A stretch of 64,000 nt of DNA from Octopus sinensis (taxonomy: Eukaryota): NCBI RefSeq assembly GCF_006345805.1, contig NC_043011.1, positions 64,554,464 through 64,618,463 of the forward strand. Direction: 5' to 3'. Position 1 is the stretch's first letter, and each line of letters opens with the position of its first letter. Shown one piece after another: positions 27,528 through 61,309 of this stretch. The notes beneath the pieces were generated by a model that had not been told where the DNA came from, did not search any database, and was given only the letters and a program-made list of their open reading frames with translations. The position numbers and the translations under genes were made by a program.

Positions 27528-27570
27528 ATGAAATATGTTCTACTACTTCTCCTTTTAATTCTCCTGCAAG
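27528..27570 (+). CDS. Copy B coding exon 1: signal peptide of a secreted 8-Cys protein (MKYVLLLLLLILLQ + G)
   Basis: ATG at 27528, basic n-region and Leu-rich h-region, then a canonical donor CAAG|GTAAGT at 27570/27571. The phase 1 end joins exon 33920 to give ...LLQ-G-YVAA. Confidence 0.85.
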
Positions 27571-28699
27571 GTAAGTAAAATCCATATCATTTCACTTCAT
27601 CTCGCAACGAGTGAGGTATCCATTATCTCTCAATACGTATATATGTATACCCGTCTCTCTACCTCCTTCCCCACCTCTCTCCCTCTCTCTCTCTCTCCAT
27701 TTATATATATATATGTATCACCGTGATCGTCGTGACTGACCAGGCTATCGGATGCTTCTATACATCGCTTATCACCATGCGCTTCGCAATGTTTTTATTT
27801 CAATGACGCCATCCCGATAGATAAGAGAGAAGGCCAACAGAAAAAAGAGCGAGAGAGCTTTGTGGCGAAAGAGAACAGGAGGGATAGCCACCACCTCCTG
27901 CCGTAGCCGTCTCCGCATACAAACGCGCGCACACACACACACACACCCACACTCACACAAACACATTCATATATATATAGACACATATATATAGATAGAT
28001 AGATAGGTATAACAAATACATATATTTTTTATCTATGAACTTATACGCATGTATATATATACATATACATATATATATATATATATATATATATATATAT
28101 ATATATATATATATATATATATACGTTTATATATTTGTTGTGCAAGATTTGTTACGTGAGGTCGTGTGTGGAAACAGATATTGTTATATTTCGGAATGGT
28201 CATTTTGCCAGTTTAGCAAATAAAAACACACGCACTATATATTTGGTGTTATATTGCTTCAGTTTTATTTATTTTTTACATTAATCTTAATCTTATTTCG
28301 GCTAGAGTTCTTTCGTGAAACTCCTGTGACCGCATGAGTGGTCCTTTTTTTCTTCATTCTTATTTGTTTCTCTCCTTACTCAACCGTAAGCCATTTTGTA
28401 TTTCTATTGAATGTTTTTATTTGCGCATGCTTATATCTCTATGTGTGTCTACGTTCATTCAGTGTGCGTATGTGTGGGGGATGCCTGTAATATTTGTATC
28501 TTCTGTTTATATACGTTCATGTAATTTGTTTTTGTTGTTGATTTTGTTTATTCTTGTTTTGTTCACGTGTTTACATCCACTTATTATTATCATTACATAT
28601 GCTTGTATGTATGTATAACATCAATACTAGTAATAATAATAATTGAAAAAAAAGAAACAAATCTAATATAGTTATTTTTATAGTTATGTATTTCTATAT

Positions 28700-30500
28700 A
28701 GTAAGATAGAAAAGAAAATAGGGAAGGCCAACTCTTGGTATGATAGCCATAAATACCAGAGTGTCATGTTCTTTGACACCACCCCAGGAGGTGAACTGGC
28801 GTACCGCTTTAGAAGGACATCAATATAAATGAAGAAGCTGTAATAAAGCTCTAAATAAATTGAAAACAAACTCAGCCACTGGTCCCGATGGATTCCCAAT
28901 AATCCTTCTAAAAGTATGTAAGAGAGTCCTAGCAAGACCACTGCAGTTCCTCTTTCAGAGCTTCCTTGCAACTGGCAAACTTCCAAGAAAACTGAAGGAA
29001 GGAAAATATGCCCTATTCGTAAAGGAGGCAGCAGAGCGGAGGCCAAGAACTACAGACCTATCTCTCTGACCTCACACATCAGCAAGGTCATGAACGAATA
29101 GTCAGAAGGAAACTATTCACCTTCCTTGACGAAAATGACTTGCTGCCTGACACCCAACCTGGTTTCCGACTAGGAAGAAGCTGCCTAACTCAGCTCCTAC
29201 AACACTATGGCTGGGTGCTGAAACGACTGCTCAACAACTCAAATGTGGAAGTGATATATTTCGACTCCGCAAAGGCCTTTGATAAAGTCGATCATGGAAT
29301 GATATGTCACAAACAGCGTGATCTTGGCATAGTAGGTAAATTGGGAGAATGGCTTCATGTCTTTCTGAAGGATAGAAGCCATTATGTAGTAGCCAATGGG
29401 GCCACTTCAATTAACACGCAAATAGTGAGCGGTGTTCCGCAGGGCACTGTTTTGGGACCACTACTGTTCATAATGGCCTTCACTGACATGCCCTCATCCA
29501 CGCTGCGAGCCATGACCACAGGTTATGCAGATGATACAAAAGTTTCACAGGCAATACAGAACCCTGAAGACACTAAGCACCTGCAACGTGACCTGGACAA
29601 AATATACTAGTGGGCTGATAAGAATAGCATGCAGTTCAATGCTGAAAAGTTTCAAGCTTTATGCTATCAGCATGCAAAACTAAATGCAAAACCTAATATA
29701 TTCACTGGACTTGGAGGGATTGCAATTCCAGAGGCACAATCAAATCGAGACCTGGGTATTTACATGTGCATGTTGCTAAATTGGCAATGAAATGTAGGCG
29801 GTTGACCAGATGGATTCTTAGAACCTTTAGAACAAAAGACCAGAAAACCATGATGGTCCTCTAGAGGACACTTGTCCTAAGCCACTTTGACTATTGCTCT
29901 CAGCTATGGTCACCATCCAGTGTCAAGTTAATCACAGAACATAAGGCGATCCAACGAGGCTACACGAAGAAGATAGACTCTCTGTAGCATATAAGCTACT
30001 GGGAAAGTCTCAAGAGATTAAAACACTATTCCTTAGAGCGTAGGCGAGAAAGATATGCCATAATATACATCTGGAAGATCCTAGAAGGACTTGTCCCAAA
30101 CTTTGGAATGGAGAGTTACACAAATACCAGAACTGGGCGCCACTGCATAGTGCCAAAGACTCCAAATTTTCCCCCAAGATGTAGGACAAGATACTGAGAT
30201 AGCCTGGGCTTCCGAGATCCACAGCTCTTCAAAATCTCCCAAAGAACCTGAGAGACCTGCATGGGGTGGATGCGGATGTCTTTAAAAAAAAAACTGGATC
30301 TCTTCCTTTCAGGTGTCCCAGATGTACCAACTTCACGGCAGGAGGTGCAGATGAGGGCAGCTGCATTGAACTCTCTTATGCACCAAATGGCAATTGCTAA
30401 AAAAGCATTCATGATGTAAAATCATGTAGCAACACTTAATGGCGGTGCACCAGCATGTCCACACCTCGTGACCTGAAACTAGATAAAATAAAAAAAATAT
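28700..30500 (+). mobile_element. CR1-like LINE, RT and 3' end, decayed
   Basis: GPDGFP, QPGFRLGRSC, AKAFDKVDH, SGVPQGTVLGPLLF, YADD, ERRRERY, A-rich tail. Lies in intron 1 of copy B. Confidence 0.92.
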
Positions 30501-30979
30501 AAAATAAAAAAAATATATATATTTATATATTTATATATATATGTATATTATTATATTATTATAGTATAAATATGTATATATATATATATATGTATATTCA
30601 TATATATATATATATATATATATATATATATATATAAATATACATATATATATATATATTTCTATATATATATATATATATATGTATATGTATATATATG
30701 TGTATGTGTATAAAGATATATATTTATATACATAGTAACAGGGAGGATATTTAAAACTCATAAATGTATTAATCAAGATAAAGTGGTTCAATATATCATA
30801 TTTTCTAGCGATATTTCTTCAATGAATATATGAGAAAAATATCGAAAACAGTTAAGCAGTATTATCTACTCAAACAGAATATTCTAATTTATAATAATCG
30901 ATATCTAATTAATGAATATGCTAATTAATAGATAACTTAATTCTTTACAATTGGATATCTCTGTTTTGTATCTCGATAA

Positions 30980-31240
30980 AATTACTGATTATAATAATAA
31001 TAAAATTAATAATAGTAATAATAATATTATTAATAATAATAATAATAATATTAATAATAATAATAATAATAATAATAATAATAATAATAATAATAATTAT
31101 AATTATAATAATAATAATAATAATAATAATAATAATAATAATAATAATAATAATAATAGTAGTAATAATAATAATTATAATAATAATAATAATAATAATA
31201 ATAATAATAATAATAATAATAATAATAATAATAATAATAT
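30980..31240. repeat. (AAT)n tract at the 5' junction of a family 1 LINE
   Basis: Direct inspection. Confidence 0.95.
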
Positions 31241-59244: not shown

Positions 59245-60403
59245 TGTTACGAGGGGACCCCCGTCAAACGAAAGCTGTTACGGAATCCCTCACACAGGCC
59301 CGTTCGATGCAGCGAATGTTCGCCACGGAACTCGGAGAGGAGAGAGAGATACAACAACAACAGCAGCAGCAGCACAGAGGCAATCGAGAGAGACATAAAG
59401 AGGCAAGGCAATCGGCTACGTTAACAACTAGTTTATATGACTATTACAATTGTTACAACATCAATTACATATCAAGATACATCAAAGCATTTAAACATGC
59501 AGATACAATATAACAGTCCGGAGTCAACAGTCCTGTTTGAAAACACATTAAAGGCATATACAATGTTCGTAGACAAATAAGTTCACGTTACAAATCAATG
59601 TTCAATTCACAACAGTTCACATTGTTCTTTTAAATTCTTTTCAACAACTCTGTACACAATGTCTTTACACATTTCAATACATCGATTCTTTTTTTACTGT
59701 CTCATTTCTTCTTTCCCTTTTTTTTTGTAACACGTATCAATACAATTCTTTTTACATAAATACCACAACTCTTTCCTTCTTTTTCTTCACATATCAAAAC
59801 ATAATTAAATTCAAACAAAACTTTACCGGACGTTCCTTTTCCGTCTGCCACACTTTCAGACAGTCACTACTGTGATTGCCAAGCCCTCTCGCTGCAGTCT
59901 CTTAGCTCTTAACCATCCCTGTCTTTCATCTGTCACATTAGAGAACAACCTGTTGCTTGCTCTGTCCTCGACTGACTCGTCTCTAGCAGAGTTTCCGGCC
60001 AACTGTTCGCCCTGAATCCCAAATCCTAACTGCTAAAACCTCCTGCTCTGTCACCACTCCCAATCTCTCCTCGCTCTGTCGCAATCACTCTCTCCCTCTC
60101 TCTCAGCTCTGCAATACTCTCTGCCCGTCTTCCTCTGCCCCTCATCCTCTCTCACTCGACTGTATCTCTCATGACAAGCCCCCCAGATTCCTTAATCTGT
60201 CTTCCTCGCTACTTTCCTCCTCCTCTTCTTCACTGTCACTAGATTCTTCCTTCTTTAAGGGGTGTTTAGAACGAATTTTAGTTCACCTGAAAGGGGTTTC
60301 AGGTCTACCCAGAACCAATCAATCCACCTGAATCTGACAGGACAATGGATATATTCCAAAGTAGGTCGCAGCCAACTGACCTTAGATTGAACCATTCATA
60401 GCA
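59245..60403. mobile_element. Putative solo LTR, 1.16 kb, inserted in (TA)n
   Basis: TG(TTAC)...(ATAG)CA termini with atat on both sides, GC-richer than the flanks, and no ORF with retroelement motifs. Confidence 0.55.
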
Positions 60404-60596
60404 ATATATATATATATATATATTTACATGTGTGAGTGATCATTGAAAATTCTTTCCTCACTCACTTCCAATTATTGCAGGAAACGGGACTTGTACAATT
60501 ATAATCATACATGTCTCTACATGTCACGTTGTAGAGAACTATGAGCAGTTTTCCACAAATCTACTTTTGCGGCTGTTGAAGTGACGAAAATGTTAT

Positions 60597-60950
60597 AATG
60601 ACGGTAGAACAATCTAGATCATCAACGTTCTTACACCTAAAGAGATATTCTCTAAGAAATAGAAGTTTATGGTGAAAATGCTCTATCGTTACACTTAGTG
60701 AGGCACTGGCATCACCATTTCCAGTTTGGTGAGAAATCGGTTGAAGCTACAGTGATTCCTGGACAACCATATACAACCACAGGTGACGACCCCATTAATA
60801 AAATGGAAGATACAATTTCTGAAGTATTGGCGACTTAATTCTCGGCAATTCCTCCAAGAAGTGTTCATAAATGTAAGAATGTACGATCCATGGAAAACTG
60901 ATCACGGCCATTTGCATTTGCGGAAGGCGCCTATATGATGGATTACCCTG
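60597..60950 (+). pseudogene. Decayed mariner-type transposase N-terminal fragment (paralog of 10825-11175)
   Basis: EIEVYGENALSLHLVRHWHHHFQFGEKSVEATVIPGQPYTTTGDDPINKMEDTI resembles mariner EVYGE.A.S...V..W...F..G..S.ED..R.GRP. Confidence 0.65.
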
Positions 60951-61265
60951 ATACTGATATGTGTATATATACATATAGATATATTTACATAAACACACAC
61001 ACACACACACACTCACAAACACACACATTTATATATTCGCTGCGACATCTGAAACTCGTTTACAATGACCACATCATTTTATTATTTTCTCAATATTAAA
61101 ACATATATATATATATATATATATATATATATATATATGTGTGTGTGTGTGTGTGTGTGTGTGTGTGTCCTGTGATTTATAATTCAAGAGCAAGTATCTA
61201 ACATATATTTCTATTTTCCCTTAGTATTATAATAATTTTACACCATATTATTTCTTTTTCTGCAG

Positions 61266-61309
61266 GACGTCACTGGGATGAAAATAACAATATCCGGAAA
61301 TACGACTGA
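61266..61309 (+). CDS. Copy B terminal coding exon (G)RHWDENNNIRKYD*
   Basis: Strong acceptor tatttctttttctgcag|GA, phase 1 matching exon 3, TGA at 61307-61309. AATAAA downstream at ~61414 and ~61570. Confidence 0.85.

Follow-up and report, generated by a model that had tools for sequence, protein, structure and literature searches.

The 64,000-nucleotide (nt) stretch of Octopus sinensis DNA analysed here (contig NC_043011.1, positions 64,554,464 to 64,618,463 of the forward strand; hereafter the window) is best explained as carrying a lineage-restricted gene, duplicated in tandem, for a small, probably secreted protein with eight cysteines, a reading to which we assign a probability of about 0.75. 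The downstream copy (copy B) would be complete, whereas the upstream copy (copy A) has its 5' end outside the window. Judged from the comparison of the two copies, exons 2 to 4 are genuine coding parts of a gene, because the paralogue preserves their boundaries, the reading frame, the stop codon and all eight cysteines despite a divergence of 11% in nucleotides and 24% in amino acids. From this framework we infer transcription, the first exon, secretion, the disulfides and an extracellular function.

A probable gene of four short exons

Copy B is formed by four exons of 43, 100, 182 and 44 nt on the plus strand, all with GT-AG introns between them, which when spliced by script give an open reading frame (ORF) of 369 nt coding for 122 amino acids (aa); the phases at the exon joins are 1, 2 and 1. 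This structure had been proposed in a first-pass annotation of the sequence, and splicing reproduced it exactly, together with the translation and the spacing of the cysteines. The product starts with MKYVLLLLLLILLQGYVAA and has cysteines at positions 22, 30, 47, 56, 64, 87, 95 and 108, that is, with intervals of x7, x16, x8, x7, x22, x7 and x12. The three donors are AAG/GTAAGT, CGA/GTAACT and GTG/GTATGA (the slash marks the end of the exon), all the acceptors have AG, and long pyrimidine tracts precede exons 3 and 4. From ATG to stop the copy spans 33.8 kb, of which the coding part accounts for 1.1%; the exons end at their splice sites, with no longer ORF around them. The features of copy B are the following.

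27476 to 27489, plus strand: possible core promoter, an AT-rich TATA-like stretch (TTTAAAATTAAAAT) about 40-50 nt 5' of the ATG
27528 to 27570, plus strand: exon 1, ATG with A at -3; codes for MKYVLLLLLLILLQ and the first base of Gly15; phase 1
27571 to 33919, plus strand: intron 1, 6349 nt; reverse-transcriptase fragment of a long interspersed nuclear element (LINE) at 29140-29610, and microsatellites
33920 to 34019, plus strand: exon 2, 100 nt; end of the predicted signal peptide (GYVAA/HF), proline-rich start of the mature chain, Cys22, Cys30 and Cys47
34020 to 55853, plus strand: intron 2, 21834 nt, versus 5948 nt in copy A
55854 to 56035, plus strand: exon 3, 182 nt; predicted helical core, Cys56, Cys64, Cys87, Cys95 and Cys108, invariant block NQFWNLLRVKDSIAC
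56036 to 61265, plus strand: intron 3, 5230 nt, versus 2107 nt in copy A
61266 to 61309, plus strand: coding part of exon 4, 44 nt; tail GRHWDENNNIRKYD and TGA stop
61571 to 61576, plus strand: AATAAA, probable polyadenylation signal, 262 nt after the stop; the 3' untranslated region would be of about 280 nt

The TATA-like stretch counts as weak evidence, and it could be due to chance, because the window is 67% A+T.

A tandem paralogue of exons 2 to 4

When the spliced protein was compared with the window by tblastn, a further copy of exons 2, 3 and 4 was detected approximately 25 kb upstream, in the same order and on the same strand as in copy B. The first-pass annotation had overlooked this paralogue, as well as the fast evolution of the exons described below, which are the two most informative features of the gene. 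The elements of copy A are the following.

3172 to 3271, plus strand: exon 2, 100 nt; AG and GT kept
9220 to 9401, plus strand: exon 3, 182 nt; AG and GT kept
11509 to 11552, plus strand: coding part of exon 4, 44 nt; TGA stop in the same place as in copy B
11815 to 11820, plus strand: AATAAA, which aligns with that of copy B in the alignment of the 3' flanks

The two copies agree in the lengths of these exons (100, 182 and 44 nt), in the six splice dinucleotides, in the frame, in the stop codon and in 8 of 8 cysteines. Over exons 2 to 4 they are identical at 290 of 326 nt (89.0%) and at 82 of 108 residues; for exon 2 the figure is 91 of 100 nt. A self-comparison of the window revealed that both copies belong to one segmental duplication that is collinear across the introns, and their homology extends at least 2.4 kb past the stop codon. 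The first position of the window matches approximately position 32132, inside intron 1 of copy B, and positions 1-3171 correspond to intron 1 of copy A; therefore, the first exon of copy A falls outside the window.

The proposed exon 1 and its predicted signal peptide

Exon 1 was sought by scanning the plus strand for ATG-initiated segments that end at a GT in phase 1 and encode a hydrophobic stretch, and 23 candidates were obtained in the window. Between 11.8 and 33.9 kb, only the segment 27528-27570 has an MK n-region, a poly-leucine h-region and a perfect donor (AAG/GTAAGT); the remaining candidates consist of microsatellite-derived sequence or have poor donors. The surroundings of this segment are single-copy within the window, and repeats start about 400 nt downstream. 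The predicted signal peptide, formed by MK, VLLLLLLILL and QGYVAA followed by H, complies with the (-3,-1) rule, having V at -3 and A at -1. In both copies exon 2 opens with GYVAA/HF, which has the form of a c-region with its cleavage site, and thus makes sense only after a hydrophobic h-region. By this reasoning the 122-aa protein would be secreted.

Two other possible starts were considered and set aside. For copy A, the segment 2607-2667 (MILLLLFMLVPG...) was a candidate first exon, but its donor GT is not conserved at the homologous site of copy B, and it is probably due to chance; this mini-ORF sits in intron 1 of copy A, in a stretch that resembles an antisense, tRNA-derived short interspersed nuclear element. 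An ATG located just upstream of exon 2 is in frame in copy B but not in copy A, because a 1-nt indel separates the copies some 20 nt before the exon 2 acceptor. No indel is present inside any exon, and therefore constraint begins at the splice site.

Exon change compared with intron change

The coding sequences of copies A and B differ by 36 substitutions in 326 nt and by no indels. The substitutions affect 30 codons, of which 27 show non-synonymous change; at the protein level, 26 of 108 residues differ. The non-synonymous (dN) and synonymous (dS) divergences are 0.124 and 0.107, respectively, and the bootstrap value of their ratio (omega) from these two sequences is 1.16 (95% interval 0.57-3.2); omega was below 0.5 in 1.3% of the bootstraps. 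The flanking introns are 90.5% identical and show 12 indel events in 1991 aligned nt.

The main coding exon departs from its surroundings. In exon 3, 21 of 182 nt are substituted (11.5%), versus 23 of 521 nt (4.4%) of the flanking intron (Fisher p=0.0012), which represents a density 2.6 times that of its own flanks; its dN of 0.135 contrasts with a local intron divergence of 0.044. Within this exon, the 15-residue core NQFWNLLRVKDSIAC is unchanged between the copies, synonymous sites included. A fixed cysteine scaffold and a fixed core, together with fast replacement elsewhere, would correspond to the pattern characteristic of genes for secreted effectors under diversifying selection.

The identity of the introns is uneven along the duplication: 95.6% around exon 3 (55527-56229 versus 8854-9595), 86.5% around exon 2 and 89.5% around exon 4. 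The tract around exon 3 may be the result of a later gene conversion; if so, the 21 changes of this exon accrued even faster than the average figures suggest.

The predicted mature protein and its structure

The predicted mature chains have 103 aa and approximately 12.1 kDa, with an isoelectric point (pI) of 8.65 in copy B and 9.16 in copy A, and are devoid of N-glycosylation sites; 13 of the 27 replacements between the copies alter the charge. Tryptic peptides such as TSENQFWNLLR and DSIACFEGEDSQCVSAIK would be expected from this protein. The cysteines would form four disulfides, since their number is even and 8 of 8 are conserved between the copies. Eight conserved cysteines in a 12-kDa chain suit an oxidising, secretory compartment.

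Structure prediction with AlphaFold2 was carried out on the contiguous translations of exon 3, which represent half of the chain. For copy B the best model showed five short helices, with a predicted local distance difference test score (pLDDT) of 71.9 and a predicted template modelling score (pTM) of 0.70; for copy A it showed three long helices (pLDDT 70.3, pTM 0.48). The proposal that the protein is probably helical thus stands, with modest confidence and at the level of secondary structure, for the part encoded by exon 3 in both copies; it does not extend to the part encoded by exon 2, which is unlikely to form helices and contains four prolines among its 28 residues. A Foldseek comparison of both partial, modest-confidence models with the PDB gave generic helical matches that were not significant (best E-values of 9.6 and 2.9).

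Search for relatives

The first reading of the sequence had recognised no named family, and the searches agree with it. The full 122-aa protein gave 0 families in Pfam-A, which also covers the Fz and GDNF-receptor domains, at E<=10 (the HMMER filters drop most matches above approximately 0.1) and 0 matches in an index of 5.8 billion proteins, and no PDB sequence was matched at E<=10, either with the single sequence or with a profile of both mature chains. A HMMER profile of exon 3 compared with 1.84 billion representatives yielded no accepted relative; its sole match, a bacterial repeat protein of 2115 aa (P0121), shares just the repeated 14-residue motif VQDSVNCFGGxDGS and is spurious. The metagenome contigs of the JGI gave no match with a protein pattern or with a degenerate DNA pattern for NQFWNLLRVKDSIAC, no paper on the peptide FWNLLR turned up in the literature, and Rfam gave 0 families on the whole window.

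These databases are mainly prokaryotic and metagenomic, consist mostly of unspliced gene calls and may cover spliced animal genes poorly. A reverse-transcriptase ORF of the same window has 1859 relatives in the index where the 122-aa protein has none; therefore, the collection contains eukaryotic repeat proteins in abundance, and a transposon protein is not what these exons encode. The lack of relatives is real as far as these collections go, but an annotation of the gene in its own genome would be compatible with it. Altogether, the kind of gene is familiar, and the protein family appears to be new.

Proposed function of the locus

Under the reading favoured here, each of the two tandem gene copies would consist of four very short exons set among long introns full of LINEs and microsatellites. 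A cleavable signal peptide, with a predicted cut after VAA, would be encoded by exon 1 together with the very start of exon 2, and the resulting basic mature chain (103 aa, approximately 12 kDa, pI 8.7-9.2) would go into the secretory pathway. There, the eight invariant cysteines would form four disulfides, locking the proline-rich N-terminal segment onto the helical core encoded by exon 3, and outside the cell the protein would serve as a stable ligand or effector. The disulfide scaffold and the 15-residue core would have remained fixed after the duplication, with replacement of the other residues at a rate no lower than that of neutral intron DNA. A fixed scaffold with fast replacement elsewhere points to diversification against a changing outside partner, which could be a target in prey or predator, a microbe, or a receptor of a mate or gamete.

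As to the function itself, which we divide by judgement and not by data, a component of saliva or venom is a tentative suggestion; an antimicrobial or immune role and a reproductive or pheromonal role are each slightly less probable than this, and any other function is the least probable. It is likewise doubtful, although possible, that the whole of a more ambitious proposal holds, namely an undescribed, lineage-restricted family with four disulfides and a new fold, under positive diversifying selection that makes exons evolve faster than introns, acting as an effector of venom or saliva, of antimicrobial defence or of mate or gamete recognition, and invisible to standard annotation because its 369 coding bases are dispersed across 34 kb.

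Alternative explanations

Several results weigh against an expressed and diversifying gene, and most of them would also be found if both copies were dead DNA, that is, a duplicated pseudogene or an ORF that was never functional, with a frame intact by luck and one or both copies decaying neutrally. An omega near 1 and an exon divergence close to that of the introns are also expected from neutral decay: the bootstrap interval of omega includes 1, the 27 amino-acid changes compare with a mean of 25.8 in a neutral simulation, and the pooled exon divergence (11.0%) does not differ significantly from that of the introns (9.5%, p=0.42). An omega above 1 is not demonstrated with two sequences, three synonymous differences and no outgroup. 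Polar positions showed no excess of variable sites (Fisher p=1), and the amphipathicity of the helices was no better than that of shuffled sequences, 521 of 2000 of which matched or beat the hydrophobic moment; given that both tests were negative, a folded protein that diversifies at its surface is left without independent support. The structural models, of modest confidence and limited to half of the chain, differ between the copies in the boundaries of the helices, and the other four models of each run were much worse (pLDDT 42-58). Homologues are absent from the collections that were searched, which may partly reflect their poor cover of spliced animal genes, and copy B has received large sense-oriented LINE insertions, with more than 10 kb of sense-oriented LINE in its intron 2 that could impair its expression. 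Finally, the support for an expressed gene comes from sequence. Nevertheless, we consider that dead DNA is an improbable explanation. From the indel rate of the flanking introns, the probability of finding no indel in 326 exon nt is 0.14; for 36 random substitutions, the probability that no premature stop arises and the stop codon is kept is 0.11, that of keeping the eight cysteines is 0.086, and that of both is 0.011; and at 9.5% intron divergence 12 of 12 splice-site bases would survive with a probability of approximately 0.30, by our own arithmetic. If the copies decayed neutrally, the frame, the cysteines and the splice sites would therefore be kept, and indels be absent, with a joint probability of about 5e-4, a figure built from features that were picked after inspection. 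Moreover, the excess of substitutions in exon 3 over its flanks (2.6 times, p=0.0012) is not predicted by neutral decay, the indel that lies just outside the exon 2 acceptor has no counterpart within the exons, and the polyadenylation signal is conserved. The neutrality test bears on the pair, and the recent death of just one copy is still compatible with it.

A different 5' end is also unlikely, although we regard it as slightly more probable than dead DNA. According to this explanation, exons 2 to 4 are real and the first exon is elsewhere, or there is an extra non-coding exon upstream, so that the protein has another N-terminus and is perhaps not secreted. Exon 1 has just 43 nt and no paralogue in the window with which it could be compared, so that the case for 27528-27570 is one of sequence logic, which also counts against the secreted protein proposed here; besides, in this AT-rich DNA, with its poly-leucine and poly-isoleucine microsatellite ORFs, hydrophobic ATG..GT segments arise as many as 23 times. 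Only 27528-27570, however, unites a lysine n-region, a poly-leucine h-region, a perfect donor and the right phase and position, and the GYVAA/HF of exon 2, present in both copies, needs a preceding h-region. The start just upstream of exon 2 is in frame in one copy only, and the eight conserved cysteines suit a secretory compartment, as stated above. Much less probable than either of these, to the point of being very improbable, is that the exons are fragments of a transposon protein or are carried by a mobile element. The surrounding DNA is rich in LINEs and the copies sit in repeated DNA, but there are only two copies in the window, collinear within one segmental duplication, and the exons are bounded by splice sites with no longer ORF. 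A match to a transposon protein, which the first-pass annotation had named among the results that would speak against a gene, was looked for and did not appear: there is no Pfam domain, and the 0 matches among 5.8 billion proteins compare with the 1859 of the reverse-transcriptase ORF.

Comparison with known systems

The nearest documented parallel is with the precursor genes of disulfide-rich secreted peptides in molluscs, exemplified by those for cone-snail toxins. These genes have short exons, with the signal sequence in the first of them, separated by introns of approximately 5 kb that are rich in repeats and simple sequence; they lie in repetitive regions and occasionally in tandem arrays. 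Their introns are conserved, whereas the exon for the mature peptide gains many more point changes within a fixed cysteine framework (PMC8152183, PMC3862624). The gene described here resembles them in its short exons, the first of which would carry the signal sequence, its repeat-rich introns of several kb, its tandem copies, the change of exon 3 relative to its flanks (11.5% versus 4.4%) and the conservation of 8 of 8 cysteines. On the other hand, it has four exons instead of the usual three, its mature chain, at 103 aa, far exceeds typical toxin peptides in length, there is no evident propeptide, and its protein has no sequence similarity to any known protein in the collections searched. The likeness is one of architecture and mode of evolution, and not of homology or demonstrated toxicity.

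Other families of small proteins share part of these features. Like the insect odorant-binding proteins (PBP_GOBP, PF01395; approximately 12-14 kDa, often in tandem), the protein is small and predicted to be helical, secreted and stabilised by disulfides. Classic insect odorant-binding proteins have six cysteines, with C-x3-C between the second and third and C-x8-C between the fifth and sixth; the protein described here has eight, no C-x3-C and no Pfam match, and therefore does not qualify as one of them. It also shares with the plant non-specific lipid-transfer proteins and other eight-cysteine-motif proteins (PF00234, approximately 90-100 aa) the eight cysteines and a basic character, to which four disulfides, helices and secretion would be added if the predictions hold. 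The plant motif, C...C...CC...CXC...C...C, requires an adjacent CC and a CXC, both of which are absent here, as is a Pfam match, and the eight-cysteine motif defines a plant family. A last likeness is found with the saposin-like proteins and the attractin family of Aplysia, small helical secreted proteins tied by disulfides, as ours is predicted to be. Attractin is a water-borne molluscan pheromone, and saposin-like and attractin proteins have six cysteines; in contrast, the protein encoded here has eight, with other spacing and without a Pfam or PDB sequence match.

Introns, repeats and the spacer between the copies

The introns had been described at first as filled with transposable elements, and this was borne out by the reverse-transcriptase domain (RVT_1) confirmed in four of their ORFs and by long microsatellites.

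29140 to 29610, 38897 to 39646, 43601 to 44383 and 51240 to 52211, plus strand: reverse-transcriptase ORFs with RVT_1 in the introns of copy B

The introns of copy B are longer than those of copy A through LINE insertions, duplications and a 535-bp repeated unit. This unit is present about three times head-to-tail in intron 3 of copy B (57589-59169), with 99.5-99.8% identity, and diverged inverted relatives of it are found at 1603-2244 and 32948-33293; units so nearly identical suggest that the amplification is very recent or that it is an artefact of the assembly. Approximately 10 kb of intron 2 of copy B, at 45400-55530, are missing from copy A; they include a near full-length LINE at about 49.7-53.2 kb, with four consecutive ORFs, one of them with RVT_1, and a 1.8-kb duplicate (43611-45429 versus 53568-55378, 90.7% identical). 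All the ORFs of at least 120 aa that bear a reverse transcriptase in the introns of copy B are in the sense orientation (29140-29610, 38897-39646, 43243-44383, 46434-46916 and 49696-53239). Sense-oriented LINEs are usually under-represented in introns, and their presence in copy B may reflect weak selection on this copy or a low level of expression.

The ORF at 51240-52211 is 92% identical over half of its length to a protein whose 2-kb contig comes from a sewage metagenome (ENA ERZ22666216; the sample name indicates Bologna, Italy). That sample thus seems to contain DNA of the source species or of a close relative.

Among the repeats of the introns, long (TAA)n and (TA)n arrays are common. 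One 1.2-kb array of the (ATT/AAT)n type, at 5354-6730, gives rise to three overlapping spurious ORFs of 407-458 aa, of poly-isoleucine or poly-asparagine, on both strands, and similar arrays are located at 30991-31239, 40470-40800, 42059-42548, 45466-45683 and 47086-47453. In the 15.7-kb spacer that separates copies A and B, no other non-repeat gene was seen; a C-terminal fragment of a LINE reverse transcriptase lies on the minus strand at 22626-22982, in a part of the spacer that is richer in G+C (44%).

Significance

Invertebrate genomes commonly contain orphan genes that encode cysteine-rich secreted proteins and evolve fast, and for this reason the value of this locus lies in a new family and in the method, and not in a new principle. 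With regard to the method, a paralogue within one window can substitute for missing transcript evidence. If the gene is expressed, it would be a concrete case of how genes for small secreted proteins escape annotation in repeat-rich animal genomes, its shortest exons being of 43 and 44 nt. It would also add an eight-cysteine scaffold without a known family, in which the main coding exon, exon 3, changes faster than the introns around it, a signature shared by toxins, antimicrobial proteins, pheromones and gamete-recognition proteins that is the usual source of new bioactive scaffolds.

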